A DNA stretch of 64,000 bases from Diadema antillarum (lineage: Eukaryota). Under the pieces are notes generated by a model. That model worked only from the letters and a program-made list of their open reading frames with translations. It did no database searches and had not been told where the DNA came from. Shown in pieces: positions 22,353-56,751 of this stretch. The DNA lies in NCBI RefSeq assembly GCF_040938485.1, contig NW_027272360.1:434001-498000 (forward strand). Reading direction: 5' to 3'. The number at the start of each line of letters is the position of its first letter. The first letter of the stretch is position 1. The position numbers and the translations under genes are program-made.

Positions 22353-22388
<36 letters not shown>

Positions 22389-24186: not shown

Positions 24187-24703
24187 TTAGATGTATTCAC
24201 AGTCAACGCCATGGTAGACTCTGACCGGAAGTGTGGTCGGGTCCGTGAATTCGGTTACCAGCAGGTACTCCCTGACCTCGGCATCGTACAGCTCGTCGAA
24301 GGTGGCCGGGTCGCGGGCGAGCACGAAGAGCGAAAGCGCGCGACTGTCCGTCACCACCGAGTACTCGTATTGGTCGTTCACGATGGGGCCGAGCTTGATG
24401 ATCCAATCTGAGAAACGAATACGACGAAGATACATGAATAAATGAGCATACACACAAAGACCGTATCCAGTGCCGTATATCAATATACGGCACTGACCGT
24501 ATCAGGGCAATTACCCCCTCTGGTACTGGTTAGTGATAAGGTTAGAGCAATGATTAGGTTCAGAGTTTTAGGTTCAGTGTTAGAGTTTTGGTTAGGGTTA
24601 GCTAGGTTTAGGTTCTGGATTTAGGATTAGGGTTAGGGACAGGGAATGGTCTGAGTAATTGCCCATGCAGGGGGTAATTGCCCTAGACCCAACCACACAC
24701 ACA

Positions 24704-24758
<55 letters not shown>

Positions 24759-27700
24759 TATCTTTATAGAGAGGTAAATGAGTAGCCCAATTAAAAGACG
24801 AATACACGAATGAATAGATATCTCTAAAATATTCATCCTCACTAAACTATTACAATAAGTTTCTACCACTGTCTACGCACTTTATCTTACTTCGGAATAC
24901 AAGTCAAGGGAATAAAATATCTCTCAATATCTCTTACCATAGAATGCAAGAACAAAGGATAATAACATTTTCTTTCTTCATGAATCTGAGTCTCTCTATA
25001 CTTGAACCACCAACAAAAGCAGATTTCGACTACATGCAAATGAGATTGCAACCAACAGAGCGACTTACAAGGGGAAGCAGCGGGCACGCCATCCAATTCG
25101 ACCAAAAGTTTGCCCGGTTCTCTCGGCAGCGGGATGTAGGCGAAGCCCTCGATGATGTCAGACTTGCCGTCGCGATTTTTGTAGGCATTGCGGACAGTGA
25201 CGTTGGTGTCAGAGATCTTACCGTCTGTGGATTTCATAATGAATACGACAAGCAAACCTAGATGTATCGTTTAAGAATATATTCCTTGATAAGAATCAAA
25301 TGCAACAACAATGGCTTTTCAATCCCAACTTACTAAGTAATTCCGGTCTACAAAAAATTATTACAGTTTAGGGCTTTTTACACTTGCGTTTCTTAACCCC
25401 GGACTTTCTCTGACCCAGGACTATCGTTAGTCCCGTACCAATTTTTTCAGCTTTTTACACTCGCCAATTAGTCCCGTACTATCTCTTGTCCGGGGCTAAG
25501 GAGAAATCTGACCTTTTTACACTCGTATTTCTTAGCCCCGGACTTTCCAAACCACATGAATATTCATAATCACGCTGTGTACTGTACACGTACACGCACG
25601 CACCGGCAGCACTTGATTACCTCGTTTCTGATTGGTTAGTGAGGGTCGGACTTCGTCTCCGTCGCTTAGCCCAGGATTATTTTTTCGTTCTGTTTACACT
25701 CACTTGCTTGGCACCGCAATTGCGGTGCTAACCCCTGCTATTTTGCAGGGCCAGATAGTACCGTACTATCGGTGGGGCTAGCCCACTTTGGCAAAAACGA
25801 GTGTAAACAGAAAGTGGGCTAAGGATAGTCCCGTACCAACGGTGGGGCTAAGGCCCCCCCCCCCCCCCCCCCCCCTTAGCCCCACCGTTGGTCCGGGGCT
25901 AAGCAAAAATTTACAAGTGTAAAAAGCCCTTATGACATACCTAATGTAGAACACTGTATCAAGAGAGATATCAAGGACGATGGATGTCATTAATGTGTGC
26001 AGCCTCAATAACGAAATACAGTATCAGCAAAGGTCTTGTTTGAGGATCAAAATGTCATGGGACAATTCACTTCAGACTCACAATCTCTTTGAAATGATTT
26101 GATAAAAAAAAAATCAAACTTCGCCAAACGGATAATTTTCTGGGATGGTATAATTAGATTAACCGATTAGATTAATCTTAATCATAATTGTATAATTGAC
26201 AAGTTTGAATGTTAGATATGTATGTTGTCGCCATGTAATTCCATTCACAGTCTTTGTTCTCTCTTTTTAAAGATGCATACGTGATTTGTTTTTAACGTCA
26301 TTCACATTATACCATACTCGATAAAAAAAAGTCTTACAGGTTGCTGTAATGCACTCAGCCCCTCCTGCTCCAGTGAAGAAATCAGCCCAGTAATCTGTGT
26401 ACATCTGCAAAATGACATAAAAAACATGATAAACTGTTTTAGATTCGAGGAATGGAGACACGAAGTCAAGAATGTTGTACGTAAACAATGGAAAACAACA
26501 TATGTCATGCGATATCAATGCCAAAGTGATTGTGATGATAACAATGACACCGCAATGGTGAAAAGATACCATACTCTCGATGACAACTTAAGATAACAGT
26601 CATGAAAGCAGTTATCGATCGGTAGAGACAGAGAAGGTACCTAACAAAACGATGACGTAAACAAAATATAAAGAAAAGAAGGAGAAAACAAATCCGTATG
26701 TACGATTGTGACTTCAGAAATTCAGGCAACGTCTTTCTGACAGTATGTAGAAATAGGAACTGATTTTCTGTTTTTTTTTTATATACCATTCTCTTGTTTC
26801 TTATAATTATGTAGCTTCATCGTCTTGAGTCACATGAGCAATTATTGATTTGTGCTATGCAACATGATGCAATTTTGAAGAGAAGGGTGCACTACGAATG
26901 TGTGAAACTGCATGGGTTGGTTTAGTATAGACGAAGTATATAGTGTGTTATTTTTCATTAGGCAGCTTCAAGTGCATGAACAATATAGTGTTGCTAATGA
27001 AAACATCCAAACGAGGTGAAGCTACAAATCTATAGCTGCCCGTAAAAAAAAAAAGAAATTAATGCAAGTTTTTGGTTCGTTCTTGATACGAAGCTGCATC
27101 TTCAAACGGCTAAATTAGAATATAAACAGGCCTGATATAACTATTATATAAAATTTCATTGGGTAGAATTGCTATGTAAAAGTTGGACAGTTACTGTCAT
27201 GCATGAAATAAAATCATCGAGCCAGGTCAGGCAAATAAATGTAGTGACACTGAGGAAATTATCTACTAGAATATCTAGAGCCTGAAAAGTATGAAGAAAG
27301 CGTCCGTCCTATCAGGGAGGTGAGACGCTTTTGTCTCACCTCCCTGGTTCTATGCACTTATGGCGTGATCTCCTGACATCACACTACGTAATAATGCCTA
27401 CTGCCTTTTGATTGTCTGATATTTCTCCGTATTACGCTTTAAATTCTTCATGCAGCAGTATTCTCGTAATAATAAAGAAAATAACTCATAATAAAAAAAT
27501 GAATAAAAATGTAGACATCAATCAAATGGAGTATGATGTACACTAAAACGTGTTCTGGGGAAACGATTAAAGCAGTAAAAGAAATTAAATTCTAGGGACT
27601 TCGATTATTCAGCAATTGCGTTTATCAGTTGCAATTTGAGGATGTTTCGACGGACATCGTTCGTCGTTCACCTCAATATGACACTTACTTGATACCACAC

Positions 27701-27814
27701 TCCAACGTATTTGTTCACATCGATGTCGTAGACAGTTCCTAGGCCTTGGACCGAGGGCGAGAGACACAAAATGGAGCCAAATATGGCCAGAAATGCTACA
27801 CCGGAACGAAACAT
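24187..27814 (-). CDS. Secreted lipocalin, apolipoprotein D-like (cluster gene 1), 189 aa
   Basis: Exons complement(27689-27814, 26338-26404, 25069-25224, 24187-24407), all GT-AG, phases 0/1/1, 570 nt. Signal peptide MFRSGVAFLAIFGSILCLSPSVQG; SCR1 YVGVWYQ; YWIIKLGP; SCR2 YSVVTD; SCR3 LFVLARD; two mature Cys. Confidence 0.92.
24468..24495. mobile_element. 28-bp palindromic hAT-like remnant with 8-bp TSD
   Basis: CAGTGCCGTATAT-CA-ATATACGGCACTG flanked by ACCGTATC at 24460-24467 and 24496-24503. Confidence 0.7.
24504..24684. mobile_element. Short TIR element with degenerate (TTAGGG)-like interior, in gene 1 intron 3
   Basis: 16-bp perfect inverted repeat AGGGCAATTACCCCCT / AGGGGGTAATTGCCCT enclosing GGTTAGGGTTAG- and TTAGGATTAGGGTTAGGG-like repeats. 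Confidence 0.7.
25371..25929. mobile_element. PIF/Harbinger-type non-autonomous element in gene 1 intron 2
   Basis: TIR GGGCTTTTTACACTTG / CAAGTGTAAAAAGCCC; TSD TTA at 25368-25370 and 25930-25932; many subterminal TTAGCCCCGGACT and AGTCCCGTAC repeats. Confidence 0.88.
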
Positions 27815-30809: not shown

Positions 30810-30816
30810 TATAAAA
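30810..30816 (+). promoter_or_regulatory. TATA box of lipocalin gene 2
   Basis: TATAAAA 125 nt upstream of ATG 30935; CRE-like TGACGTAA at 30762-30769. Confidence 0.55.
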
Positions 30817-30934
30817 GACGCGAACACCCATCACCCAGATAGTCACTTCTAGAGGTCCACAAGGAACATTCAGCTCTTCTGGAGACATCCACAGCTTCTT
30901 CTCTTCTGCTCAAAGAAAAATCTCCAAGACAACC

Positions 30935-32877
30935 ATGAAACAGACGCTGGCAGTCGCTCTCTTCCTCATCTTCGCCGTTCTCGGTGGACACGCTCTGGAG
31001 GTGGTGCCCGAGCTAGATGCCACTGCCTACGTTGGAAGATGGTACCAGGTGAGACTGTCAAACTATCTCGATTTCTTGAAGACTTCAAATGCTTTCATTG
31101 ATGAACGTAACTATTTACGTATTTTTATAAATTGTGCTCTCCTAGTATCTTTCGTACACCTTAGTTTAACAAGGCTTTTTCCCCATTGGAAATAAAATAG
31201 GAATGGAAGTATGAGTGGAGAAAAAAATCGAAAGACGTTATTAGCAAACGAAATTTGAAGTTATACAACTTTGTAAGTTTACAACATTCAATGTAATGGA
31301 CTGCTTTCGTTTGACAGGGAAGAAAAGGAAGGACATGCGAAAGTATTAACTTACCAGCATGACTTGCTATTATTGATTTTTTTTTTGCACCATAGGTTTA
31401 CACAAACTACTGGGCTGATCTGTTCTCCAACGTGATGGAGCCTGACTGCGTCACAGCTGATTGTAAGTAGAGTTATCCTCTTAATGAGATCAAATATTGA
31501 CCAGGAAAAATTGTCTGGCTTTTGCCAGTTGGCTTCTGGGGACTTAAAGACAGAATAAACTAAAATAAAATCGCCACAAAATAATAACTATGAACTGTAA
31601 GCAAACTGCTGACATCTCATTTTTCAAATGCGATCCGACACATTAATGCAAATTTGTCTCTAGTAGTAACTGATGACTCTGGCATTGAATAGACATATTG
31701 GTTCCACGTTTGTCACTTGGATTGATTTACATGGTGGCTATGAGACCCATCACCACTTTTCAGTCATAAAGTTGGGCAGAAGGGAATCGTCATCATTCAA
31801 ATTTTGAAATAATTACAACCATGTCCGAATGTGTTGTAATAATTCGCTCTTTTAGCGGGAAAATGTCGTTTCTATGGGCGTTGTGCCCAGCTTTAGGCTG
31901 AAAAAAAATATGTTGAAGCGTTTTAGTACATGATAATTCTAAATTGAGGAATAGGAAGATGTGAGACCCGCCAATCGCTCAAGAAGAAAATCGTTGGTGT
32001 ATTTTTTTTCTGTTCTTCTGTAACGAAGACGCCCAGATCAACGCCACTTTCCTGTCCGTCTACAACGCCAACTACCGGTTCGACGAGAAGTACACGGATG
32101 ACATCAGCGGCTACGCCTATATCCCTGACCTGTCGACACCAGGCAAGCTCAAGGTCGTTCTCGAAGGCGTTCCCGTGGAAGGAGATTGTGAGTAAAGACA
32201 GAAAATGCAAAGCAGAGCCTTGTTCGCATATAGTATAAGTCTTCTCTCAACATGCTGACCATATTAACAGCGTCTTGCTGGCTTGTTTTGTTAGTGATGA
32301 AGAGAATGTTCCGTCTTTCGTTCCATAAAACAAGGTAGAGAAATAGCTTTTCTGCCTTGGTTGTCATGAGCAAAGGGGTTATGTACATGTTGGACATTTA
32401 ACAGATGTTTCACAAAAAAAAAAGGCTGCAATGAAAAATAAATCATACTCAGTATGCAGGAAAATGAAATTTAACAAGCTTGTTAAGATTTCCTCTCTGG
32501 AAGTGTATGCTGAAGATCGTATATATGGGTGTCTTTTGTTTTTTGTTTTTTTTTTTTGTTTTGGGGGGGGGGGGCAAAGGAAGTGGAAGAGAAAAAAATA
32601 CCAACATCATCACAACGCAATCCTCCGTTCATCTACAGATTGGATCTTCGAGCTGGGACCGAAGATAAACGGCCAGTACCAGTACAGTCTCGTGACGGAC
32701 GGGGAGAAGGCCCGTCAGCTTTTCGTGCTGGCCCGCAACCCTTCCCAGTTCGCCCTGCTGTACGAGAAGCAGGTGCTGAACTCCGTTGCCAACGCAGGCT
32801 TCAGGGGCCCGCTGAAGAGGCCCTACGCGGTTCCTCATCCCGATGAATGCGTCTACCCACCCACCGCTTCCCTGTAA
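30935..32877 (+). CDS. Secreted lipocalin, apolipoprotein D-like (cluster gene 2), 192 aa
   Basis: Exons 30935-31048, 31396-31462, 32029-32187, 32639-32877; GT-AG; phases 0/1/1; 579 nt. MKQTLAVALFLIFAVLGGHA signal; YVGRWYQ; YWIFELGP; YSLVTDG; LFVLARN; C-terminal CVYP. Confidence 0.93.
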
Positions 32878-33523
32878 ATGAGCATCGGGTTCCTTCAATG
32901 TATAATTCAAATTTATTTATTCCCGAACCCACGTCATTGCTATTACTCTAATTATTTATTCTCTATAACCAAGCCGTGTTTGATCACGGGGCCCTCTTTT
33001 CTCATATTGACTCTCTGACTTCAGCGTGTTATCGTCTTTTAGCTAGTTCTGTTTCGTATATGCCCATACAATTTTCGTAAAAGCGTATCCTAAAGTGTTG
33101 CTATCAACAGGTCTCTGGGTCTAAACTAAAAACAAATGAGGTTCTCATTGTCAATTCTCTCTAACGAAAAAACGTGACAGTACACAACTAAACAAATCAT
33201 TATGTCAATGTTAATGATCTCATCTCTTTTTCTTTGGATTTCTCCATTGATGGTATCTCAACTATTCAGATACAATATGTTTAAATCTTCACAAAGTGGA
33301 ATAATCATAAGCATTTGGAAATTACTTTTGAGAATTTTCCGTCGAAGGATACTTGCTCATTCTGGATATATTAAAAAATATATTTACAGTAAGATTAGGC
33401 AAATAACTTTCTGTTTATTACATGCCACGGAATTTTGTGTTATTTATTGAATAAAAGACGACTGTACAACTGCATAATCAATGTTGAGTACATTTTCTTC
33501 CTTCATAAGCCAGAGTCCACTAT

Positions 33524-33690
33524 NNNNNNNNNNNNNNNNNNNNNNNNNNNNNNNNNNNNNNNNNNNNNNNNNNNNNNNNNNNNNNNNNNNNNNNNNNNNN
33601 NNNNNNNNNNNNNNNNNNNNNNNNNNNNNNNNNNNNNNNNNNNNNNNNNNNNNNNNNNNNNNNNNNNNNNNNNNNNNNNNNNNNNNNNNN
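33524..33690. other. Assembly gap (167 N)
   Basis: Run of N bases. Confidence 1.
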
Positions 33691-35074
33691 TAAGTATAGA
33701 CATTCATGAGGATATATAAATATGTGTGTATGTATGTATGTATGTGTAAGGAGAGAGAGAGAGTGTGTGTGTGGGGGGGGGGGGGGGGGAGAGTTGAAAC
33801 AGAGAAATAATCAAGAGATAAGTTAAGAACACCCCAGCATAACAAAAGTGTGTGTGTGGTTTTTTTTTCAAAGAAAAGGGGTACATGATAAAGCCGCATC
33901 GCTAGGAACTTATACATATTTTACCAAGAGCTGTATGAAGCATGTTCAAAAGAAATACTAGTATAAAATGTTATCAATTTTTTTTTTTCAACACCCAAGC
34001 GTGTTATGAAATCATATAAGACACAAAATCTGAACACTCTGCTCGAAATTTTCCGATCTGATTTTGGGTCTTCTGCGACGTTCATAATAATGTTCAGTTC
34101 CGCAACTAACTGAATTTGATTTCAAGTGAATAACTATATAATTAACTTCACCACTGAGCAGTTTCATAATGTAGTGCGTTTTTTTTCTCTTGATGATTAT
34201 GGAAGGAAGACATAATATTCGATGGAAACAAGAGTGTTAGAGATAATGTTACAAATAAGAAAACTGAAGCGTTACACATGAACTGATCGTAGTTCTTTGA
34301 AATAAGTTTCAAAATAGAATACGTGCAACGTGAAAGCACTGTACAGCTCAGGACTAAACATGACTATACGTCAAAATGAAATATTTTTCATTGACTTCTG
34401 CACAACGTTTGCATAGTATGGTGTACTCTGTTTAATTTGTTCTTCTCATAATTTTTCTTCCTGTGTTAAAAAAGCCCAAAATGATGTTTTTCTATCATTA
34501 ATGGATGATTTCGTGTCAAAACATATTTCCTTTCCTTTTGTGAGCCATTTCAGTTACTTTTATGTGTGTTTCCTTTGAAGGTATATAACTGTCGAGCTAA
34601 CACGGCATTTTCAAAAAAATTATTTTCTTTATCATTGTATTTTATTTTTTAACTTGACGAAACTCTTTGTTCTATTTATTTTTCATTATATTCTTAAAAC
34701 TAAAAGAAACAACAAATCAGTTGGCTTCGATATAGGGTTTGATGATTGTAGAACGACATAATTTTATCAAGAAAATGAGTTACGTAATGTGCACTTGCAG
34801 TTAGTTTACTCTGGTAGAGAGTAGTAGTTTTTTTTAATAGAGGAAGGCAGAGAGAGAGAGAGAGAGAGAGCGCGAAGGTGCGAGAAAAAAGAAACGTTAT
34901 CCTCTGTAACAGAAAAGTGTTTTCTCTTCAACATCATGGCTGTGTTTGCTGTGTGTAGTGTAATAATATATTAGTACAACGTAAACATTATCGAGTGTGT
35001 ATGTGTGCCTACGCATGTTTCCCACTATGCAAATGTCGTACAAAAACAAATGACTTTTTGTACTCAGTACAGTT

Positions 35075-35250: not shown

Positions 35251-35298
<48 letters not shown>

Positions 35299-37900: not shown

Positions 37901-38195
37901 ATTACGTAATGTCAACTGACTTCTTAAAAGCCTTATTTTCTTTCGCCCTTCTCTAACAAAATGCCAGATGACGATTTCACACGACGATAATTCCATAGCG
38001 TAGGACTATTTTTCAAAGAAATAAGTAGACACGGTATTATGAAATAACCAAATAAGATGATAAGAATAAGAAGTGGTCAAACAGACCTCAAAACTTACGC
38101 AAGGCATCATTCTCTTGCAACATGGGCGTGTTCATGCCCTACTCATCTCATGGGTGGACACGTGTTCATCTTCCGACAATTCATGCCAACTCTGG

Positions 38196-38202
38196 TATAA
38201 AA
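38196..38202 (+). promoter_or_regulatory. TATA box of lipocalin gene 3
   Basis: TATAAAA 131 nt upstream of ATG 38327, a spacing similar to gene 2. Confidence 0.55.
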
Positions 38203-38326
38203 ACTGATAACTTGGACGTTCCGTTCCATCACCACTGACACCGGCTCCAGACATTGTCGCAGAGACACGCCCTAGAGGTACAGAACTCGTCACCACACGC
38301 ACACACTCACACACTCGCCGCCAGCC

Positions 38327-39781
38327 ATGGGAAGGATGATGCTCCTTGCTCTATGCCTTGTCGCCGCCACCATCGGCTGTGACGCCTTGCACACCGTACC
38401 AACGCTTGATGCGGGGGCGTACATTGGTCGCTGGTATCAGGTGAGAACAGAGAGTGCATTCCTGGATAATTTATCATATCTCCCCTGTACTCATTTCATC
38501 TCAATAGTAGTCTAACATTTGACATGCCCGACATGATTATTGGAAACACCAACATTTGTGATGACGTGCATTAAAATTCACGCTCCTGATTTTTTTTTTC
38601 TCGCCACTTCCTTGTGGATGCTACTCTGTTTTGTGTCCTAATTAGTGTTTTCCGATTACAGATACACCGGTAAATGAACAAAATGTGTTCTTGTCATTTC
38701 CCGACTTCTATCGCGCACACCGTCAAGTAATGCTCGAAGAAATTCTCTTGGATCTCTTCCTAATTGTGTCTAATTTCAACAAAGGTACAAATGGACCTTC
38801 TCAACCAAAAGTTAATAATGACAAAATATCTGAAGTGGTCTATCTGAATATGATTTTTTTTTTTTCATCAAGACAAGACAAAACGACTATGTATAAACTC
38901 ATATACACCTTGACTAGGTGCTGCTGAGTCCTATTTCATAAAAGATGTTACTATAGCAACTCTTGCTGGTATGGCAACTTCCCATATAGCAACGGCTAAT
39001 CAGAAAGCTGGATTCTTGTCGTTACCATGGTAATTGCCATTCCAGCAAGAGTTGCTATCATATCAACAGTTCATAAAATGGGATCCTGGCCCCAGGTCCT
39101 GGTCTTACATGGGACCAGTCGTGTGTGTATTTGGGGAGGATCACTTTACCGAGTCATGCCCCCTGGTCTTTGCAATGAATGAATGTAGCGGGATCTTTTA
39201 CTTGTGTATATGGCTCTCGAGAGACCCCACAGTTTATATCATAGAGGGACAGAGTGTTTTACCCTTTACTTGAGGGGACTGCATGGTAACACACAGCATT
39301 GCTCAGACTCTTTGGGCTTCAAACCCGAGACCAAGCCCGATTGATTCCAAGACACATACCCTTAAGAACAGAGCCACCTCTCGGCCCTTACCTGATAAAC
39401 CCATATCATTTGAAAGACTACTTGCAGGCAATTGCAACCTTTACATCATGAATTTTGTTCATCATCTCTTTTTCTTGACTATTCTCTTCTACCAGGTTTA
39501 TACTAACTACTGGGCTGATCTGTTTTCCGGCGTGATGGAACCAGATTGCGTCACGGCCGATTGTACGTGTAATCAGATGTTCCTTAGATTACCAAATTAA
39601 TTTAACGCCAATTCGTGAAATCAGTTTTCCCCGTTTGTTTGCTTGACAATCAAACTGGAGACCTCATTGTACGTACATAACATATTGTTAAAACCATTAT
39701 AAAAGAATGAATCGTTAAAAAATATCTTAATAGCGAAAACACTCCCCACAAATACAATATTGTATGATTTGCTGTTATAGT

Positions 39782-39816
<35 letters not shown>

Positions 39817-40936
39817 GATAGAAAGAGGGAGAGAGAGGGAGAGAGCAACAAAAGAAGAGACTCAAAAAGATTTATATGTCGGTATTTACTAACAAACTTG
39901 ATGTCTCGTAACCAGACGGACTCGTCAATGCAACGTACGTGACCGTGTATAACGCAAATTGGCGGTTCGAAGGTAACTTCACCGACTTCATCACTGGCTA
40001 TGCCTATATCCCCGACGTGTCGGACCCGGGAAAACTCAAAGTCGTTCTGGACGGGGTTCCCGTTGAAGGAGATTGTGAGTTTTTTTTTGTTTTTTTTTGA
40101 TATTTCTTTTGTTCTTGAATTTCCATCTACAAATTGTCACGTTGTCATTCAGGACTGAATATTGATGACGTCTTAGGAAAAACCATCGAGGGTGGCGATA
40201 CACGTGGCATGACGCAATACAGACATCTTACTGTCAATTAAAATGAAAGAATTGCTTGGCACACCGGTGGAATTAGGATTCATGGGCGGTGGAATCAAAC
40301 AATTAAGATAGACATCAAAAAATCAAAATGTGATAATCTACATAATTCTTGTTTACTCTTCCCAGAGTTGACATGATAAAATCTATTTTCAGCATTCGTT
40401 TTAGCATTTTCTGAATTCTTGTTACCAAGACACTTGACACGTGTTCGCCAGGCAACTTGATTCTGATCTCTTTCTTGATATTATGTAAAGGATATATGCC
40501 TAAGTAACACTGATGAGATACTTAAATTATTTTGACCGAAGAATCATTTGCTCACATACCAACATTCATGATATTAACATTGTTTGATTCGTAACCTTCA
40601 TTAGAATGTTTTTTTTTTTCATTAAACAAAGTCCTAATGGGGTACTGAAAATTCTACCTGACTGCATCGTGATAAAAAGTATGGATGCTCTTTCCCTGTG
40701 CAGACTGGATCTTCAAGCTGGGTCCCATCGTGGAGGGGCAGTACCAGTACAGCCTTATCACCGACGGAGAAGCGGCCCGTCAGCTCTTTGTGCTCGCCCG
40801 CGACCCGCAGGAGTTTGCCGAGCTCTACGACAAGGAAGTGATGGAGTACCTACCCCTTCAAGGTTTTACCGGCCAGCTCAAGGCTCCCTATGGCATCACG
40901 CACAACGAGGACTGTGTCTACCCGCCAACTTCTTAA
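38327..40936 (+). CDS. Secreted lipocalin, apolipoprotein D-like (cluster gene 3), 190 aa
   Basis: Exons 38327-38440, 39496-39562, 39916-40074, 40704-40936; GT-AG; phases 0/1/1; 573 nt. Signal MGRMMLLALCLVAATIGCDA; YIGRWYQ; YWIFKLGP; YSLITDG; LFVLARD. Confidence 0.93.
38927..39085. mobile_element. Harbinger-type MITE (CTG TSD) in gene 3 intron 1
   Basis: Reverse-orientation copy of 41505-41661; CTG at 38924-38926 and 39086-39088. Confidence 0.75.
39095..39384 (-). mobile_element. tRNA-derived SINE, degenerate, in gene 3 intron 1
   Basis: The minus-strand head has an A-box-like GGTGGCTCTGTTCTTAAGG (~39361-39379) and a B-box-like GGGTTTGAAGCCC (39314-39326). Confidence 0.5.
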
Positions 40937-41504
40937 TAAGCACGCTGCTATCAACAAACTGTCTTTCCATGAATTAAAGATTAAAAAAGAAAAACCTCAT
41001 CAAAGAATCTAATGACTTATCACTATGCCTTGTCCCCAGAATGATGTAATGGCGTTGTTTTACAACTAACTGTTGCATGTTACGATAGTTTGCAAGCAGC
41101 TACCAGGCTTTGCCTTTTCCCATCTAACAACTTTCAGGACTATAGGCTTCGTGAAAGGTGTTTGGAGAGTGATGCACAAGTAGACATTAACTCAATGGAG
41201 CTTGAAACGTTTCTTTGTTTTCGTCAAAAATATGACGAAAAATGACCAACTTATGGACGCCAATAAGGCCAATGAGTCATCCTATCCATGGAGAAGAGAG
41301 AAAACAGTAGTACAGTGCACAAGTGACGAACTGCAGATGACGCGACGAATGTATGTCGAGTATTCATAAATTCGAAATTTTCATCAGTCATTTCAGCCAA
41401 CCAATTCACTGTCATTGAATCTCTTTGGCGCTCACGCAGTTTAGATAGTAGTGCAAAGCATGAGGTGGTATTGAGGCTAGCAGACACCAAAAGCAATTGT
41501 TCAG

Positions 41505-41661
41505 GGCCCCATTTCATAAAACGTTGATATGATAGCAACTCTTGCTAAAATGGCAATTGTCATAGTAACGAAAAGAATCCAGCTTCCTGATTGGCTGTTG
41601 CTGTGGGAAGTTGCCATTCCAGCCAGAGTTGCCATCCTATTATCTTTTATGAAATGGGGCC
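41505..41661. mobile_element. Harbinger-type MITE (CAG TSD)
   Basis: TIR GGCCCCATTTCATAAAA / TTTTATGAAATGGGGCC; CAG at 41502-41504 and 41662-41664. Confidence 0.85.
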
Positions 41662-42391
41662 CAGAACAGCATCATCAGTGGTTTGATAGAGGGTTTTAGC
41701 TAAGATTGTTTTACTGTGTATAGCTGATGGGAATTGGGCATGGTAGAACTGAATGAACATGCCTGAAGAGAGAAAATTAACAATAGTCCCATTAGTTCTT
41801 GTCAGTTTGAAGTCCTATATCATACAAAAGAATGAATATTACGTATCAGATAACAGGAATTGGACAGCAATACAATAAGACAATGATTATTATAATGAGA
41901 GTTGCATCTTTTTCTTATTGAGACGATGTCATACTGTTAACATTTCACTGTTCATACTTATAAGGGGCCCGTTCTTTAAAATTATGGTAACTTTACTATC
42001 AATGGTAACTTTGCAATCAGTAGTCAACATCAGTGATTTCACGGCTTTGATTGGCTATGACATATTGTTGCTATAGTAGTTAAACGTTGGTTACACAGTT
42101 ACCGTTAACTGTAAAGTTACCGTGTATTTTGTAACGGGGCCTGTATTTATTGAATTAATATCATGTTAAAAAAAGAACACTTAAACGACTGTTTCCACGG
42201 TTGTGCCTTATTACAGAGTTATTTTTAATCTTTCTTCTAAGTGATGGAATGTGTGAGAATGCGATGTTTACTGTCACTGGCTGTCTTGAGTAGTTTCATT
42301 GTGGTTGTACATTATGACAATTTCGAACTCAGCCCATGTACATGATGATTCTTGAACATAAATAAATAAATAAATAAATGAATAAATAAAC

Positions 42392-42438
<47 letters not shown>

Positions 42439-42621
42439 TTAAAAGCAAACGCCAATTAGAAACTCCGGTGTCATTTGAAAAACATACGGGAATAGAGAAT
42501 GTCGTAGGAAACGGGTTAACAGTGAAACCGTGAACCCCATTTGGACAGACGTTTGTATTGGTCAATGTTTGGTTCTCTCGAAGATGCTACTCCTTGCATT
42601 GATTTGTTCTGCTCGATATTT

Positions 42622-42670
<49 letters not shown>

Positions 42671-43098
42671 GCTCATTCAAAGATCAATCGTGTCATTAAC
42701 GAGAAAAAGCAATGATTACAATCTACTCTCACATCATGGACATCTAGATTTACAAAACCATGAAATGCATGATGACATTACATACAGTTACTGAAATGCA
42801 ACAAATTGATTATATTTATTCATATTACAAAACTCTTACAGCAACACATTGTGAGCCAAATGCCCAGTCGACTGGTCAATAGAGATATAATCGTGGTCAC
42901 CTTATTCGCTTATCTATGAGCTTATCTACTCCACCCATGGGTCCTGCCGGCTTAAGTAATGCGACTGATTGTGATGTCAACAAGTGCTCTACTTCCTACC
43001 TAGAAGAGGGATCTTATGCATGTATATTTAATTGTTCCTGCCACCATTGGTCCAAGAGCATCGTAAAGCATAACGCGAGCAAGGCAACTCTGTACAAA

Positions 43099-46000
43099 AT
43101 GGCGACCACCAGGGCCAAGGTTCTTTGCTTTCTGACTCTGTGTTTACTTGGGAGCGGGAACGCAATTCACACAGTATCCAGGCTGATTCCTGAGCAGTAC
43201 GTCGGAAGATGGTATCAGGTAATAAAGTCATTCATGAAATGTTACGTTATCACTCTGACGCGTTTATTGATAAAAAAAGACAATGATGCCAGGATGATAT
43301 TCAATATTCAAATGTATATAGCTGTAAATTTGTTGACAGCTCAAATGCAAAGTATCCTTATTTCTTATTCAAACTTGATGATTTCCCAATGTATGTACAG
43401 TGTATGTATGTATGTATGTATAATGTGTGTATGTATTATATACGTAGACATACTATGCATATGTAAATGAATACATAAATCATATTTCGCAGAGTATCAT
43501 GAATGTACGTAGGCTTTATTACTCTAAAGTGTAATGCCTGTGTATATGTGTGCTGGAGAAGAAAATGAGAAGCAATTAACATCATGATACATTTGATGGG
43601 CTGGTGTACATGTTGTAAAGAGCACTTCACAGTGAACCGAGGCAGAATTAAAGCTTAAGGTATCACTATCAGCTAATGTCTTATGTACGATTGCTCGAAG
43701 AAAAAAAATCCCACTCAAGGGTAAGAATTTTAGATATATAGGCACCATTTGTCACAGAGGACTAAGTTTAAACAATTAAGGGTGAGGTATAAAATCTCTT
43801 TCTTCATTCAAAATGCATATAGAAGCATGTGATCATAACATTAAATCAAATTGTAAAAATTACTAAGTGATATGAAATGTCATCATGATATAATATCTCT
43901 TTTTCAGTGATGAATGTAGAGATATGTGTAAATATTACGTAACTACTATGTATATGTGGCACTGGGCCGATTAAAACTCCTTATTACTTCCCTCATACTG
44001 TCTTCAAAGTCCATCGATCATCGATCAATTTCCAAGTACACTTTCAAAGGGGGAAAACTTTTCTTATGTGAGTTTTGATCTCTCTCAGAATAATCCATTG
44101 ATGTTGTTTTCGTAGGTCTTGACAAACGCCTACTCCGATTTCTTCACTGGTGTTGCGGAACCAGACTGTGGGACGGCTGACTGTGAGTATAAACTTACTT
44201 TCTATTCATTGTTTCCTTCCTTTCCTGCCGTTTTGTTTCTTCTTTTCCCCTTTGCTCCTCTTGGGTAAGGTCATCTGTTTGTGATTTTCTTTGACAGTTA
44301 AAACGTCCTACACCCTTTGTAATCATCAACACAGACATAAATTCAAGTAGAGAAAGAGAAAGGCAACACTTGTATATCCTCTGACACGCCTTCAGAGTGG
44401 ATTTAGATATCCTCTTTAGGTACTGTTTCAGCTGAAAAGAAAGGAAAAACTTTGCGACAAGAAAGTAACACATTTATCTTCATGTTTTCCTTCGTCTGAA
44501 TATAAAAGCTACTACCCAGTCATACAACACAGTATCTATTTACTGGTATAGTTAATTTGTCGTTGCCATGTATTTTCGAGAGTGTCTGATGTAAATAATA
44601 TTTCTATTGGTGCTTCGTTGATAATGTTTTATCTCTCCAAGTTGGGATTTGAACTTTTATAATCATATTGTGACGTATGACATGAGTTTTCGGAAGACGC
44701 CATAAATTATGCTTTTAGGTAAGGCTAACGGTTCCATTGTTTCCTGGGGGACATGTACATATCCCTATACAAACCCTGTATCTATACGCGCAGTCTTATA
44801 GAATGGATTATATCATATATAATATATATATGTAATCTGCCTTCAGACACGCTCGTCAACGAAACATACGTCACCGTGTACAACGCCAACTATCGGCTAG
44901 ACGAGGGCTACACGGATGGGCTCGGGGGTTACGCGTACATTCCTGACCCGGAAATCCCTGGGCGCCTCAAGGTGGTACTGGATGGCGTATCTGTTGAAGG
45001 AGATTGTGAGTTTATCTTCTCCCTGATATCTTACATTATTGAGATCGCAGGAATGTTGATGCTTATTAGTAAGCTAAAATGGTCTGTGTCTCTTTCACTT
45101 TCTGTGATGAAGGCGTTCGCTGCCTTGACACAATTTTTTTCCGTTTCCTAAGAAAGAAACAACAACAACGCACGTTTATGATCTTACATAGTGTTCCTAT
45201 CTTTTCACCAAGGTGTTTATGTCCACCGTAGCTTAATTTCGCCACCTACAGTTCAATTGAAATAACAGCTTCTTATTCTTCATATTAATATATATATTCA
45301 TTTTCAGGAAATTGGGCTTTGAGGGTGATAGGATTACGATTTTGATGTGGGTTTCAGGAATGGGTTGGTGGTAGTGATATGTGGTAGTATATGATACAAG
45401 AGCTGTTGCACCCTTCTTGATGTTGAATCAATGATGACGACGAGGAAGGTGCTATAATCACAACAACAGTGCTGATTGAGGTAGTAGGATTAATACGACA
45501 ACGATAAAGGGATTGTTGAAACTAGTTTACAGAGCAATAATGACAAAATCAGCAGTTTCTCCACATGCTATATAAGTATTCGAGAACGGTTAACACTGGA
45601 TTACGACAGCTGATCACAATGGACTGATAAAGTTCATACAAAAGGGTGAGATGTCGACGATTATCTCAGAGAAAAGGGAAACATAATCATACAAAGAAAA
45701 AAATAAGAATCAAGGCGACGGGGGGAAAGAAATAATGGTAACAATGATAAGAAATATAAAGGGAAATAAGACAGAGAAGGAATAGAATGATAGAGAAGAG
45801 GATATGGGATGAAGAGGACTGAAGAGGGAAGGGGGGGGGGGGGAGGGGGAGAAGAGAGAGGGATTTATAGTGGGCCACCTTTTTCAACTATCCTATCAAT
45901 CTCTCTTTAAAGGACAAGTTCACCTTTATAAACATAAGGATTGAGAGAATGTAGCAACATTAGTAGAACACATCATTGAAAGTTTGAGGAAAATCAGACC

Positions 46001-46723
46001 ATCGGTTCAAAAGTTATGAATTTTTGAAGTTTTTGTGCAGTACCCGCTGGATGAGAAGACTACTGCAACGCATGAATAACTTAGATGTCACATGCGTACA
46101 ACAATATAAGGAAAATATAAAGAGAATTTCACAAAATTCCATCTTTTGAAAAAAGTACACATTCCCCTGACTCCTTACCGACAAATGTTATGGGTAATAT
46201 CATTCCCCCTGCCTTTAGAAAGAGGCAAGTCAAGTGCTCTTTTATCATGCGAAAAAAGTGAAAATATGTTGAATTTTCTTTTACATTTTCTTTATACTGT
46301 TGTACGCATATGACTCACAAGCTGAAGTAGTCTCCTCATCCAGCGGTTCCAACACAAAAATTTAAAAAATTCATAACTTTTGCATCGATTGTCCGATTTT
46401 CCTCAAACTTTCACAGATGTGTTCTACTGATATTGCTGCATTTTCTCAATCCTTATGTTTATGAAGGTGAACTTGTCCTTTAAGACTGGGTGTTCAAGCT
46501 TGGCCCTACGGTGGAATCGAAATACCAGTACAGCCTGGTGACGGACGGACAGGACGCGCGCCAACTCTACGTGCTCAGTCGCGACCCCGCCCAGTACTAC
46601 CAGCTATATGACTTCGAAGTGCGGGAGTACGTGGCATTACACGGGTTCACCGGTCAGCTGAAGTCGCCATACGAAGTGCCACACCCTGCAGAATGCGTGT
46701 ACCCACCTAGTCCGGAGGAGTGA
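43099..46723 (+). CDS. Secreted lipocalin, apolipoprotein D-like (cluster gene 4), 194 aa
   Basis: Exons 43099-43218, 44116-44182, 44847-45005, 46485-46723; GT-AG; phases 0/1/1; 585 nt. YVGRWYQ; YWVFKLGP; YSLVTDG; LYVLSRD. Confidence 0.92.
45911..46479. mobile_element. Kolobok/T2-type MITE (569 bp, TTAA TSD) inserted in the exon-4 splice acceptor of gene 4
   Basis: TTAA(45907-45910)|AGGACAAGTTCACCTT...AAGGTGAACTTGTCCT|TTAA(46480-46483)G|exon 4; ~210-bp imperfect TIRs. Absent from paralog gene 5 (CTCTCTTCAAG|ACTGG). Confidence 0.92.
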
Positions 46724-48005
46724 TGTTTTGCACCCCACTCCATTCAGAATCTCTCATCCTCTGTCTGAATGTGTCAGCTTTGAGAGGGGAGACACTACCG
46801 TATTGTGGTACAGGGCTTAACATTGATTTTCATTTGATATTAAAAACCTTGAAAATATTTGAATCAATGCAATGATGTCGGGCAATATGTGAAATTCGTT
46901 AGATGAAAGAAAATGAAATCTTATCTTAATCTTTTATTTATACTGACACGAATTGATAACCTCTAAATGTAATCATGTTTAGCATATCATTGTTCTTTCA
47001 AGTAGCAATTTCTGGATAGACGGTAAAAATGTTTACCGCAGAAGGTTAAAAGAAAGAGAACCAGATCCGAGGTATTTTTATATACTGAGGGACGATGCGA
47101 CGTTGTATACAAAAATAAAGGTTCGGACTTAAAATTAGTACAAAATTATCAGTCCCTTCGAAATGACACATGTCAGAGTAATTGTGATCAATACTTAACC
47201 AGCTTGTCAATCACAATTACTCAACCAGTTTGTCAGAATTTTACGCATGAAACTTGCTTATTTAACATCATTTATTTATGCAAATGTATTGCTTGCAATT
47301 ATTGAAAGAATGGAAACAATAAAACCAGCAGTTACGCAACTAGCAAATACTGTTATCATCTTGTTTGTTTGTTTTAATTTCAAAATTTGAAGGATTACTT
47401 GTTGGTATTTTTCAACGTTCCTTGATTAAACCGTGGAATAAGTGCAGTCATTTAAGAGTTCTTTTTTTACATGATATTTATTAAATGAATACAGGCCCCG
47501 TTGCATAATACATAATAAGTGTACAATATAATGGTAACTCTGTAACCAATAGTTTACTACCATAGCAACAAAGTGTCACAGCCAATTAAAGCCGCGGACT
47601 CACTGATGTTGACTATCACTAGTAATTGCAGTGTTGCCATTGATAGTAAAGTTACCATAAGTTTAGATAACGGGCATGACTGTCTTGAGTATTTTCTTGT
47701 TTATATGGCTTTGGATCAAAACAATTGACAATAAGACAAATTGGCTTTTCTTTAAGACAATTCCGTTCCAAACTCATGTACACGTTGATTGTGAATATAC
47801 TTTTACATAGATTTAACCAAACGACAATTGAAATCTCCGGTGTCGTATAATTATGAAACATTATATGGGAATAAAGAATGTCATAGGAAACGGGTTAACA
47901 GTGAAACTGCCTGAACTGCCTTTTGAAGAGACTTTGGTATTGATTAATATTTGGTTCAACCCCATCTTCCAAAGATGGTCCTCCTTGCATTGATTATTCG
48001 ATATT

Positions 48006-48047
<42 letters not shown>

Positions 48048-48467
48048 CCAGGAGGATCAATCGTTTCAGTTACAAGCAAAATCAGTGTTTGAAATACTTA
48101 TCCTCGTATTATGGGCATCTAGATCTATCCAAAATTATCAAATGGTATTATGCCCAGTTACTGAAATACAACAAATTAATTAGATTAATTTATATTACAA
48201 AACTCTTACAGTAACACGTTGTGAGCCAAATACCTAGTCAACAGTGATATAATCGTGGTCACCTTATATTCGCTTATCTTTGAGCTTGCCTTATCTCCTC
48301 CGCCCATGGCTCCTGCCGGCTTAAGTAATGCGACTGATTGTGATGTCAATAAGTGCTCTACATCTTGCCTAGAAGAGGGATCATTTACATGTATAATTAA
48401 TTGCTTCTGCCACCATCGGTCCAAGAGCATCGTAAAGCATAACTCGAGCAAGGCAACTCCGTACAAA

Positions 48468-48628
48468 ATGGCGACCACCAGGGCCCAGGTTTTTTGCTTT
48501 CTGACTCTGTGTTTACTTGCGAGCGGGAACGCAATTCACACAGTATCCAGGCTGATTCCTGAGCAGTACGTCGGAAGATGGTATCAGGTAATAAAGTCAT
48601 TCATGAAATTTTACATTATTACTTTGAT

Positions 48629-48710
<82 letters not shown>

Positions 48711-51682
48711 AACAGAAAAAGGTGATGCCAGGATGATATTCGATAGCCAATTTGATATAGCTATATATTATATTTGTTGACCACGTTGTTGACAGCTTAA
48801 TGGAAAATTCTTATTTCTTATTCGAACTTAATGCTTTCCTAGTGTAGGCCCTATGTATATGTATGTCTGTATACATATATGTGCACACATATAAATGAGT
48901 AAGTAAATAAATGAACAAATATATGTATATATATACACATAGATCTATATATATATATATATATATATGCATATAATATATAAATAAATGAAACATATTT
49001 GGCAATATATCATGAATGAATGCAAGTCTTATTGGATTCATACAAAGTACATACAAAGTGTATATGTGGATGTGTGTTGGAGAGGTGAAGAAGGTGCATA
49101 TGGAACATTATAATACATTGATGATGTACATGTTGTGAAGAGCATTTCTTTACAGTGAACCGAGATAGAATACAAGCTTAAGGTACAACTGTCTGCTGAT
49201 GTCTTACGCATGATTCCTTGAAGATAAAAAAAAAAAATCCCACTCAAGGGTACAAATTTTAGATATATAGGCACCATTTGTTGCAGAAGTCCAAGTTTAA
49301 ACAAGGGTGAGGTACAATCTTCATTTAAAGTGCACTAAGAAGCATGTTAAATCTTGTGATATCAAAACAAATTGTGGAAATGAATACTAGTAAGTGATAT
49401 GAAATGTCACCTTCATATAACAAAATGCTCCTTTCTTCAGTTTGCATGTAGAGATGAGTATAAATACATGTATATTGTAACTACACACTTATACTACGTA
49501 ATATGTGGTACTGAGTCGATTACAATTCCTTCGACATTACTTCCCCCATAGTGTCTTCAAAGTTCATCGGTCGATATCATTTCTAATTCCATATTTCAAA
49601 CGGGGAAAACTTACAAGTTCTGTTCTCTCTCGAAGTAATCCATTGATGTTGTTTTCGTAGGTTTTGACAAACTCTTACTCCGATTTATTCACTGGACGTG
49701 ATGCGAAACCAGACTGTGGGACGGCTGACTGTGAGTATAACATCACTTTTGTCCTTTCTCTTTCTTTTCTTTCTTGTCGTTGTCGTTTCTTCATTGTTCT
49801 TCTTCTTCCCTTTGCTCCTCTTGCCTAAATAAACGAATAAATAAACAAATAAATAAATGAATAAATAAACAAATGAATATATGAAATTGTATATAAATCA
49901 GTAAATGACATTTCTAGGGTTGCTTCTATGGTAGTGTTTCATCTCTCCAAGCTGTGATTTTAACTTTCGTCATTATAAATGTGACGTATGAAATTAGTTT
50001 TTTTTTTTATTACGCGCCATTAGATAAGTTGCTGATCAATAATTTTTAATAACGCAAAGGTGTTTTTCTAGCATAAAACAACGGTGCATTGAACGTCTGA
50101 TACTGTCATTAAAGCATTTATGGAGATTTATGGAGTATTCGAAGACATGTTGGTACTAATACTATTTTTGTTTTAGTTGACGATGATTTCAGAGATGAAA
50201 TTGAGAAGTTAATTCAAGCTGGAAAATTCCTGCTCGACAATTAGCGTCATCCATTCAGATAAGGCTAACGGTTCGATTGTTTCCAAGGTGACATACACAT
50301 ACTTTTATCAAACCCTTCGTCTACACACAAAGTTTCATAGTCATAGAATAAATTATATCTTTAAACACGTATCAATCTGCATCAGACACGCTCGTCAACG
50401 AGACACACGTCACCGTGTACAACGCCAACTATCGGCTAGACGAGGGCTACACTGATGGGATCAGGGGTTATGCCTACATTCCCGACCCGGAAATCCCTGG
50501 GCGCCTCAAGGTGGTACTGGATGGCGTACCTACTGAAGGAGATTGTACGTATATTTGTCTCCTTGATATCTTACATTTTTGAGATCGAAAAAAATGCTGC
50601 TACTTATTAGTAACCAAAATGTTTCTTTCTCTTTCTCTTTCTGTGATGAAGGCAGAACAGACAAACAAACAAACACCTCAGGGTTATGATCTGAACATGA
50701 TAGTACTCCTATCTTTTCACCAAGGTGTTTGTATTCACAATGGCTCAAACGCCACCTATTATTCAATGATAACTGGAAAATGATAGCTCATTATTTTTAA
50801 ACACACTCGGATATTGGGACAGTGTGGGTGACGTTGAGGATCAAAATTTTGGTGTGGGTTTTAGGAATGGGTTTCGGGAAACGTCTATAGTGATCATGTG
50901 TTTATGATAAGAGCTGTTACACACTTCCTGATGTGAAATCAGTGATTGACTATTAAGAAGGTATATTTATCACAACAATAGTGTTGTTTGAGGTAGTAGG
51001 GTGGATAAGACAACGATATCAGACTTGGAGAAATTGATTTACAAAACAAAAAGAACAACAAGAACAGAGCAGCTTCTATACATGCTATAAAAGTATTAGA
51101 GAATCGTTTATGCTTGATTACGACATTCTGATCATAATCATGATGATGGATTAACTATGTTCGTACAGATGGGTGAGATGTCGACGATTATCTCAGAGAT
51201 AAAGGAAACATAAACACACAAAGAAAACAAATAAGAATCAAGGCGACATAAAATAATGGTAATAGCACAGTAAAAAAGATGCGGGGAAATAAAGATAGAG
51301 AAGGAGCAGAAGAGAGAGGAGGAAATAGGATGAAGAGGACTCAAGAGTGTAAGGGAGAGAGGGAGAGGGGGGAGGAGAGAGGAATAATGAAGAAAATTAC
51401 AGTGGGCCACTGCTTTCAAAGATCTTATCAATCTCTCTTCAAGACTGGGTGTTCAAGCTTGGCCCTACGGTGGAGGCAAAATACCAATACAGCCTGGTGA
51501 AGGGCGGACAGGAAGCGAACCAACTCTACGTTCTCAGTCGCGACCCCTCCCAGTACTACCAGCTGTACGACTTCGAAGTGCGGGAGTACTTGGCGTTACA
51601 CGGGTTCACCGGTCAGCTGAAGGCGCCGTACGAAGTGCCACACCCTGCCGAATGCGTGTACCCGCCTAGTCCGGAGGAGTGA
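48468..51682 (+). CDS. Secreted lipocalin, apolipoprotein D-like (cluster gene 5), 195 aa
   Basis: Exons 48468-48587, 49661-49730, 50386-50544, 51444-51682; GT-AG; phases 0/1/1; 588 nt. ~90% identical to gene 4 by hand count; one-codon insertion in exon 2; SCR2 reads YSLVKGG. Confidence 0.92.
48633..48708. repeat. Compound (CT)n(TA)n microsatellite, representative of many in the window
   Basis: Other simple repeats: poly-G 3714-3736, (CA)n/(TA)n 3782-3849, (CA)n 14221-14290, (TG)n 18030-18079, 22357-22387, 42625-42662 and 48007-48046, (CA)n 24694-24755, (TA)n 35250-35296, 39785-39816 and 42394-42434, (GAA)n 37224-37260, (GA)n 56708-56747. Confidence 0.95.

Positions 51683-56702: not shown

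Positions 56703-56751
<49 letters not shown>

Follow-up and report, generated by a model that had tools for sequence, protein, structure and literature searches.

The window analysed here, a 64-kb stretch of Diadema antillarum contig JBFRCO010001472.1, contains a tandem cluster of five lipocalin genes spanning positions 24187-51682, the stop codons of genes 1 and 5 marking its exact limits (Table 1). A six-frame motif scan of the 64 kb returned exactly five G-x-W-Y-Q sites (27703 on the reverse strand and 31034, 38426, 43204 and 48573 on the forward strand), and tblastn with the exon peptides of gene 2 recovered every one of the five genes as four exon pieces (E values down to 1e-52). All other tblastn matches in the window had E > 0.1, and the search found no sixth lipocalin gene, pseudogene or extra piece there. 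The spliced coding sequences are open in all five genes, the 15 introns are all GT...AG, and the phases are 0, 1, 1 throughout, at three positions common to the five genes (after WYQ, within the Tyr codon after TA(D/T), and within the Tyr codon before W). The NCBI annotation places five genes here with coordinates and lengths agreeing with our models, and the models of genes 1, 2 and 3 match the stored RefSeq proteins exactly, those of genes 2 and 3 residue for residue. The allele of gene 5 on the other contig, P0008, is named 'outer membrane lipoprotein Blc-like' in RefSeq. The spliced gene-3 coding sequence is collinear, over all three junctions, with an intron-less 1170-bp JGI metatranscriptome contig from a relative. 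The spliced models and the NCBI gene calls are thus in agreement with the initial annotation, which had described five complete four-exon genes with identical intron positions and phases.

Table 1. Positions of the five lipocalin genes and of two non-coding features in the 64-kb window
Feature	Position	Strand	Description
Gene 1	24187..27814	-	189 aa; RefSeq 'apolipoprotein D-like', P0121; exons 27814-27689, 26404-26338, 25224-25069, 24407-24187; same coordinates in NCBI
Gene 2	30935..32877	+	192 aa; RefSeq 'outer membrane lipoprotein Blc-like', P0001; exons 30935-31048, 31396-31462, 32029-32187, 32639-32877
N run	33524..33690		167 N; intergenic between genes 2 and 3; overlaps no exon or intron of the five models
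Gene 3	38327..40936	+	190 aa; RefSeq 'uncharacterized protein', P0006; exons 38327-38440, 39496-39562, 39916-40074, 40704-40936
Gene 4	43099..46723	+	194 aa; exons 43099-43218, 44116-44182, 44847-45005, 46485-46723; NCBI product also 194 aa
Inserted element	45911..46482		572 bp, non-coding; lies within gene-4 intron 3, its end 2 bp short of exon 4
Gene 5	48468..51682	+	195 aa; exons 48468-48587, 49661-49730, 50386-50544, 51444-51682; NCBI product 195 aa

The N run between genes 2 and 3 adjoins simple repeats, starting 647 bp past the gene-2 stop codon and ending 4.6 kb ahead of the gene-3 ATG. It is probably a deliberate mask, since the assembly is described as gap-free (PMC13511894). Pfam scans of the ten largest ORFs flanking the cluster gave no significant match.

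All five proteins start with a hydrophobic leader that has small residues at −3 and −1 and terminates in A or G, the next residue being L or I and not a lipidated Cys. Outside the leader, each protein has two cysteines, and the sequons of genes 1 to 5 are NVT, NAT, NAT, NET and NET, with an additional NFT in gene 3; residue counts therefore agree with the two-Cys mature chains and the sequon series listed initially, and the spliced models likewise carry the tail motif GF...PY..PH..C.YP reported for genes 2-5. The tails end in PPTASL, PPTS, PPSPEE or CEYI. No hydrophobic C-terminal GPI-attachment signal was found (mean Kyte-Doolittle value of the last 15 residues −0.74 to +0.23, a heuristic only), and a GPI-anchored lipocalin of the Lazarillo type was rejected on this heuristic. 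The three conserved lipocalin regions (GxW close to the N terminus, a TD-type motif on strand F/G and a conserved Arg towards the end of the barrel) are present with a sole deviation: GxWYQ and L(A/S)R occur in all five genes, as had been proposed, and TD(G/S), proposed for all five as well, is found in genes 1-4 and replaced in gene 5 by KGG (TGG in the other haplotype).

The cysteine pattern is that of a wider family. Among 106 relatives, C56 is invariant, C184 is present in 105, exactly two cysteines occur in 90, and the sequon loop is common to 76. In a profile search of the PDB, the two Cys columns of the family align with 'GRCIQANY' and 'DQVNC' of ApoD, and the single Cys pair is, as judged from this alignment, the equivalent of ApoD Cys41-Cys165. 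The one-disulfide pattern and the sequon, which had been read as a trait of the cluster itself, are instead the default throughout the branch of the Lipocalin_2 family to which these genes belong.

Family membership is clear at the level of full-length proteins. Against a gathering score of 24 bits for Pfam Lipocalin_2 (PF08212), genes 1, 2 and 3 score 54.3, 42.7 and 43.3 bits and the gene-5 allele P0008 scores 44.3 bits, and PF08212 is on record in the NCBI annotation for the annotated products of genes 4 and 5. Scans with single exons mostly fell under the threshold, whereas the full-length proteins lie above it. The product of gene 2, the one modelled with AlphaFold2 (pLDDT 94.1, pTM 0.88), is predicted to have eight strands and helices (strands from 34-41 through 141-145, helices within 148-165), that is, the lipocalin arrangement of an eight-stranded antiparallel beta-barrel followed by a C-terminal alpha-helix. 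In Foldseek, the best matches of this model were Blc (3mbt, TM 0.86 by target), AtTIL (8wb2) and ApoD (2hzq), with probability 1.00 for Blc, TIL and ApoD. Together, the Pfam scores and the fold model bear out the earlier identification of these proteins as secreted-type lipocalins. The top scorers of a large representative search were rejected as closest relatives: they contain two to eight lipocalin domains whose scores are summed, are about 40% identical, and come from MMETSP or metatranscriptome contigs and from Schistocerca.

An orthologous five-gene cluster is present in Lytechinus pictus (LOC129270103, 104, 105 and 107 and a gene for a 197-aa protein). Gene 1 corresponds to the 197-aa gene, gene 2 to LOC129270103, gene 3 to LOC129270104 and genes 4/5 to LOC129270107; relative to Diadema, the L. 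pictus gene-2 orthologue is inverted, there is an extra gene-3-type copy (105), and the gene-4/5 type is present as one copy. In the starfish Patiria miniata, a gene of the gene-1 type and a gene of the gene-2-5 type lie head to head, 1.7 kb apart (LOC119738440 and P0010), and the P0010 gene appears to carry one additional intron. The intron positions and phases are common to the L. pictus orthologues and to an ApoD-like gene located elsewhere on the Diadema contig. In the tree, from which vertebrate ApoD was left out, the five genes belong to a 20-row echinoderm clade (support 97/89) apart from an echinoderm ApoD-like group (a Diadema 211-aa protein, L. pictus P0020 and Asterias P0024). Within the clade, gene 1 pairs with the L. 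pictus 197-aa gene (100/99), gene 2 with LOC129270103 (98/91) and genes 4/5 with LOC129270107 (100/100), and Patiria P0129 groups with the gene-1 type and P0010 with the gene-2-5 type. The HMM search (PF08212), phylogeny and synteny comparison suggested with the initial annotation have thus confirmed the family, placed the genes in an echinoderm clade and located clusters in L. pictus and Patiria. None of the five is an orthologue of a well-characterised lipocalin; such orthology would have spoken against the original reading.

We place the split between sea urchins and starfish at roughly half a billion years ago. On the evidence of the tree and gene order, the gene-1 and gene-2-5 types were probably neighbours before that split, in an old echinoderm cluster; the gene-2-5 type then appears to have given rise to three genes before the split between Diadema and Lytechinus, and the only recent duplication, confined to the Diadema lineage, is that of genes 4 and 5, which differ by a dS of about 0.15. 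These trees and dS values are in line with the relative ages first proposed, with gene 1 the oldest and divergently transcribed from gene 2, and genes 4/5 the youngest. They do not fit a lineage-specific repertoire in the sense of the species or genus, as four of the Diadema paralogue types have orthologues in the L. pictus cluster, and both the split and the adjacency are found in Patiria. The cluster genes are under purifying selection, with dN/dS of 0.08-0.19 between orthologues and 0.37 between genes 4 and 5. The paralogues, described initially as diversified, are so modestly: a comparison made for hints that the ligand pocket had diverged gave few group-specific residues, with only 21 of 168 mature positions fixed inside orthologue groups and different between groups, and most of these set gene 1 against the rest.

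Genes 4 and 5 are 89.7% identical. The element inserted in intron 3 of gene 4 has terminal inverted arms of 161 nt, is flanked on both sides by a TTAA duplication and is missing from the other haplotype. The original pyrimidine tract stays upstream of a decoy AG, and an exon starting from 45913 would meet an immediate TGA, so that gene 4 of the element-bearing haplotype may be mis-spliced owing to the insertion. Because the other haplotype lacks the element, the insertion is recent and the open frame of gene 4 is weak proof of an intact gene; the initial description of the genes as intact holds for all five ORFs, but for gene 4 it holds at the ORF level only. Gene 4 on this haplotype, and perhaps gene 5, could then be redundant young duplicates becoming pseudogenes in a partly decaying cluster, leaving a functional set of three or four, and the higher dN/dS between genes 4 and 5 than among orthologues, together with the loss of the TD motif from gene 5, would be consistent with such decay. 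However, the TTAA duplication recreates an AG two bases ahead of exon 4 and NCBI models a full-length gene-4 product, on each contig the two genes keep full ORFs and canonical splice sites, and dN/dS (0.26-0.37) is still well below 1. We therefore regard decay as rather unlikely, albeit the most plausible of the alternatives weighed here.

The cluster very probably represents five tandem paralogues encoding small (about 19 kDa mature) secreted, N-glycosylated lipocalins of the ApoD/Blc/TIL branch (Lipocalin_2) that act as carriers. As predicted from sequence, each protein would be directed to the secretory pathway by a cleavable N-terminal signal peptide, and the mature chain would form an eight-stranded beta-barrel cup followed by a C-terminal helix. 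One disulfide (Cys56-Cys184) would staple the long C-terminal tail to strand B, a single glycan would sit on the loop past strand B, and the cup would serve as an extracellular carrier of a small hydrophobic molecule. By analogy with Blc, ApoD and TIL, the ligand is most likely lipid-like (a fatty acid, lysophospholipid, sterol or haem-type molecule), and it may vary among the paralogues. The structure titles of solved relatives name very different ligands, namely vaccenic acid, progesterone, haem, biliverdin and astaxanthin. An alternative, suggested in the initial annotation, is a pigment-handling repertoire for carotenoids, bilins or urchin naphthoquinones, in which the proteins would be chromoproteins or would transport pigment in the spines, the pigment cells or the gonad. 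Sandercyanin and bilin-binding protein (both with biliverdin) and crustacyanin (astaxanthin) are among the farther solved relatives by the family profile, and the paralogues have been separate for very long, which would suit distinct ligands. However, these pigment binders match the family profile less well (E 1e-11 to 1e-5) than TIL, ApoD and Blc (E 1e-21 to 1e-13), which bind lipid or haem; lipocalins are unmentioned in a paper on Lytechinus spine colour morphs; and the carotenoid binder characterised in sea-urchin gonad is FABP-like and not a lipocalin (PMC4156332). A pigment role thus seems improbable, and we assign a similarly low probability to a broader proposal, in which an echinoderm-specific cluster kept since before the urchin/starfish split would have its paralogues partitioning echinoderm ligands (naphthoquinone pigments, carotenoids, and steroidal or triterpenoid defence compounds). 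If true, such partitioning would offer the first protein handle on metabolite carriage in coelomic fluid, larvae or spines, and the gene-4 allele with the polymorphic element at its acceptor would be a natural variant with lost or reduced function.

Nothing in these data suggests a new mechanism, and the cluster is an ordinary member of a known family. NCBI had already predicted the five genes; what is added here is an evolutionary frame of an echinoderm clade with two ancient types, a three-way expansion in echinoids and one recent duplication in Diadema. In the literature searched, we found no description of these echinoderm lipocalins. The value of the frame lies in renaming and orthology, as 'Outer membrane lipoprotein Blc-like' misleads for a secreted animal protein. 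L. pictus is amenable to genetic work, and its orthologous cluster could help to find the ligands of carriers of this kind.

Human ApoD (PDB 2HZQ) and the invertebrate ApoD-like lipocalins have in common with the urchin proteins the PF08212 domain, the barrel-plus-helix fold, the GxW motif and the Cys41-Cys165-equivalent pair, and ApoD is a secreted glycoprotein with a signal peptide, as is predicted for the five urchin proteins. In contrast, identity to ApoD is only about 22%, and the urchin tail is longer and proline-rich (PY..PH..C.YPP). ApoD has two disulfides, Cys8-Cys114 and Cys41-Cys165, and a counterpart of the former is missing in the urchin five, whose profile lacks Cys both at the Cys114 position and close to the N terminus. 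Assignment to ApoD proper was therefore rejected, on this missing disulfide and on the lack of grouping with the ApoD-type genes of the same phylum. Plant TIL (PDB 8WB2, haem-bound) has the same family and fold and, of the solved structures, matches the sequence profile best (E 2.7e-21), but in the alignment TIL lacks Cys at the conserved Cys column of the family; TIL is not known to have a signal peptide and is membrane-associated.

E. coli Blc (PDB 3MBT, 1QWD and 2ACO) belongs to the same Pfam family, has the 'GF' segment past the C-terminal helix, and superposes best on the gene-2 model (rmsd 2.5 Å). This structural match, and the RefSeq name 'Blc-like' given to two of the products, might suggest that the genes are those of bacterial Blc lipoproteins, brought in by horizontal transfer or as contamination. 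However, Blc is an outer-membrane lipoprotein with a lipid anchor on its N-terminal Cys and no introns, and it aligns at 23-27% identity only, whereas each urchin gene has three spliceosomal introns at the positions and phases of other echinoderm lipocalin genes, an ApoD-type Cys pair and a eukaryote-type signal peptide. A bacterial origin is thus exceedingly improbable, and membership among bacterial Blc lipoproteins was rejected on the introns, the synteny with L. pictus and Patiria, and leaders devoid of a lipidated Cys; the RefSeq name reflects similarity only. The closest known counterparts are the L. pictus genes LOC129270103/104/105/107 with the 197-aa gene, and Patiria LOC119738440 with P0010, direct orthologues and paralogues that are alike in exon structure, Cys pair, sequon and tandem clustering.

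Exactly five G-x-W-Y-Q motifs were found in a six-frame scan of the window, at 27703 on the reverse strand and at 31034, 38426, 43204 and 48573 on the forward strand, and a tblastn search with g2 peptides from all four exons returned the same five lipocalin genes, g1 to g5, in four pieces each (E down to 1e-52), with no further lipocalin-like pieces in the 64 kb. Spliced models built from the junction sequences have GT...AG borders in 15 of 15 introns, at three common positions with phases 0, 1 and 1. The g2 model matches exactly a 192-aa protein that was retrieved with the g2 exon-4 region and that RefSeq names 'outer membrane lipoprotein Blc-like [Diadema antillarum]'; the g3 model is identical to its stored RefSeq protein, and g1 corresponds to RefSeq 'apolipoprotein D-like'. 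Furthermore, the NCBI annotation of the window's contig, JBFRCO010001472.1 (GCA_040938485.1), has five genes whose outer coordinates and product lengths are exactly those of the models. The five genes are thus real and had been annotated before, and the initial annotation was correct in describing five complete four-exon genes with identical intron positions and phases. Transcript evidence is indirect and comes from a relative: a 1170-bp JGI contig carries a complete, uninterrupted 189-aa g3-type protein and matches the spliced g3 CDS over positions 48-563 as a single block that spans all three junctions; we read it as spliced mRNA of another sea urchin.

Coordinates of the five lipocalin genes and the N run (window positions)
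Feature	Coordinates	Strand	Description
g1	27814-27689, 26404-26338, 25224-25069, 24407-24187	-	189 aa, spliced model
g2	30935-31048, 31396-31462, 32029-32187, 32639-32877	+	192 aa, spliced model
g3	38327-38440, 39496-39562, 39916-40074, 40704-40936	+	190 aa, spliced model
g4	43099-43218, 44116-44182, 44847-45005, 46485-46723	+	194 aa, spliced model
g5	48468-48587, 49661-49730, 50386-50544, 51444-51682	+	195 aa, spliced model
N run	33524-33690		intergenic, 647 bp past g2 stop, 4.6 kb ahead of g3 start codon

The N run adjoins simple repeats and overlaps no exon or intron of g1-g5; since zero gaps are reported for assembly GCA_040938485.1 (PMC13511894), it is probably a deliberate mask, not an assembly gap. 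No gene is called in the 10 kb past the g1 3′ end (14187-24187). A second contig, JBFRCO010000813.1, carries a gene with a 'Rost' domain (Pfam PF21534; region L006 26944-27911), whose start at L006 27758 corresponds by alignment to about window position 57500, downstream of the cluster (region ~56.7-57.7 kb and beyond).

The cluster had been proposed to be a lineage-specific repertoire, and this the phylogeny and synteny contradict. In a careful tree of 44 proteins, g1-g5 fall in a 20-row echinoderm clade (support 97/89), in which g2 pairs with Lytechinus pictus LOC129270103 (98/91), g3 with LOC129270104 (92/78; their subgroup, 99/95, also takes in LOC129270105), g4 and g5 with LOC129270107 (100/100), and g1 with a gene of 197 aa reconstructed from its L. 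pictus locus (100/99). These L. pictus genes are neighbours, in the order g1-type (-), 103 (-), 104 (+), 105 (+) and 107 (+), and the cluster is therefore common to both urchins, although one gene is inverted, L. pictus has an extra g3-type copy and Diadema has the g4/g5 duplication. An exhaustive search with g1 found LOC119738440 of the starfish Patiria miniata (53% identical), which groups with the g1 type (SH-aLRT 92) in a quick tree of 89 rows; the g2-5 type is joined there by Patiria P0010. In Patiria this pair is arranged head to head with a spacing of 1.7 kb, adjoined by a 397-aa two-domain lipocalin, and Diadema g1 and g2 are likewise head to head, 3.1 kb apart; thus both types and their adjacency are older than the urchin-starfish split. 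The cluster is an old, conserved echinoderm set, not a recent burst. Because a Lingula relative (48% identical to g1) and Owenia relatives fall nearby with weak support, the label 'echinoderm-specific' is provisional. The intron positions and phases of g1-g5 are shared by the L. pictus orthologues and by a 211-aa Diadema gene, and these, together with synteny, rule out a bacterial origin.

The 211-aa gene belongs to a second, ApoD-like echinoderm group, separate from the 20-row clade in the 44-protein tree. It and a 200-aa gene, both Lipocalin_2, lie on the window's contig ~37-45 kb past the window's right end (L008 6001-8446 and 11154 onward), and belong to this more conventional group. Proteins with 2 to 8 tandem lipocalin domains also occur. 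One is the two-domain Patiria gene beside the pair (L013 1-3496); others, from the exhaustive g1 search, include an 868-aa MMETSP transcript product with three domains, a Schistocerca protein of 1360 aa and products of short metatranscriptome contigs with two domains each. All of these may be either true fusions or merged gene models.

Protein identity is 43-51% between g1 and g2-g5, 57-62% between g2/g3 and g4/g5, 66% between g2 and g3, and 89.7% between g4 and g5. The dN/dS is 0.08-0.19 for the Diadema-Lytechinus orthologue pairs of g1, g2 and g3, with dS saturated, 0.19 for g2 versus g3, and 0.37 for g4 versus g5 (dS 0.145; 0.26 on the second contig). Purifying selection acts on the old paralogues and is somewhat relaxed in the young g4/g5 pair. 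Among ten sequences of four types, 43 of 168 mature positions are invariant and 21 are fixed within types and different between them, most of these setting g1 apart, so that the cluster is diversified, but modestly.

Comparison of g4 with g5 revealed a 572-bp insertion (45911-46482) at the g4 intron-3 acceptor, with 161-nt terminal inverted arms (88% complementarity) and TTAA on each side. The element ends two bases ahead of exon 4, where the right-hand TTAA and a G re-form an AG acceptor; a decoy AG now follows the original pyrimidine tract, and an exon from 45913 meets an immediate TGA. No other copies of its 35-nt end occur within the window. Contig JBFRCO010000813.1 of the same assembly holds the whole five-gene cluster, with 88-98% nucleotide identity over the main collinear blocks (L006 against window 37987-57654, plus L012), without the element (site around L006 7986-7989). 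Because the doubled assembly size was ascribed to incomplete haplotype collapse (PMC13511894), the second copy of the cluster most likely represents the other, uncollapsed haplotype and the insertion a recent polymorphism. Therefore, the open frame of g4 on the window's contig says little about whether the allele works, and for g4 'intact' applies only to the reading frame. The second contig also has an extra ~4.3 kb in g5 intron 1 (L006 10169-14450) and a g4 copy annotated as 209 aa. The g4 copies (window versus L006 5146-8229) differ by a dS of 0.126, close to that between g4 and g5, whereas the g5 copies are nearly identical (dS 0.007), which suggests either an old polymorphism or gene conversion between g4 and g5 in one haplotype.

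Lipocalin membership was borne out by the Pfam Lipocalin_2 profile (PF08212; gathering score 24 bits), which g1 (54.3), g2 (42.7), g3 (43.3) and the g5 allele P0008 (44.3) all exceed and which is on record for the annotated g4 and g5 products. The AlphaFold2 model of g2 (106-sequence alignment; mean pLDDT 94.1, pTM 0.88) has eight strands followed by a C-terminal helix, and ahead of them a lower-confidence N-terminal helix (the leader). Foldseek matches it best to Blc of E. coli (3MBT; TM 0.86 by target), TIL of Arabidopsis (8WB2) and human ApoD (2HZQ), in agreement with a family profile search at the sequence level, which finds these three proteins at E 2.7e-21 (TIL, the best match), 3.6e-21 and 8e-14 and in which Sandercyanin, bilin-binding protein and crustacyanin rank lower. 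By heuristic criteria, each of the five leaders combines a hydrophobic core, averaging 2.6-3.4 on the Kyte-Doolittle scale over 10 residues, with small residues at -3/-1, and the extra cysteines of g1, g3, g4 and g5 fall inside the leaders. None of the five proteins has a hydrophobic C-terminal tail in a hydropathy check, so a GPI anchor is predicted to be unlikely. The TD motif ascribed to all five occurs in g1-g4 as TD(G/S), but g5 carries KGG.

The two family cysteine columns align with ApoD 'GRCIQANY' and 'DQVNC', the Cys41-Cys165 pair of ApoD; the single predicted disulfide would therefore be the conserved lipocalin staple from strand B to the C-terminal tail. C56 is invariant in 106 relatives and C184 present in 105, exactly two cysteines beyond the leader occur in 90 of the 106, and an N-x-S/T sequon lies in the same loop in 76. 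The one-disulfide pattern and sequon are thus present but not peculiar to the cluster. Since they are family-wide, and the cluster is old and conserved in echinoderms, the initial annotation, whose observation is confirmed, was right in outline and overstated in its interpretation.

We found no literature on these echinoderm lipocalins; the echinenone binder that has been characterised from a sea-urchin gonad is an FABP-like protein (PMC4156332). The best reading is that the g1-g5 products would act as extracellular carriers of small hydrophobic molecules, with cargo possibly differing among paralogues. The pigment transport proposed earlier is possible but unsupported, and by analogy the cargo is probably lipid-like: the nearest solved relatives are Blc, ApoD and TIL, with vaccenic acid (a fatty acid), progesterone (a steroid) and haem as ligands, respectively, whereas the pigment binders are more distant.
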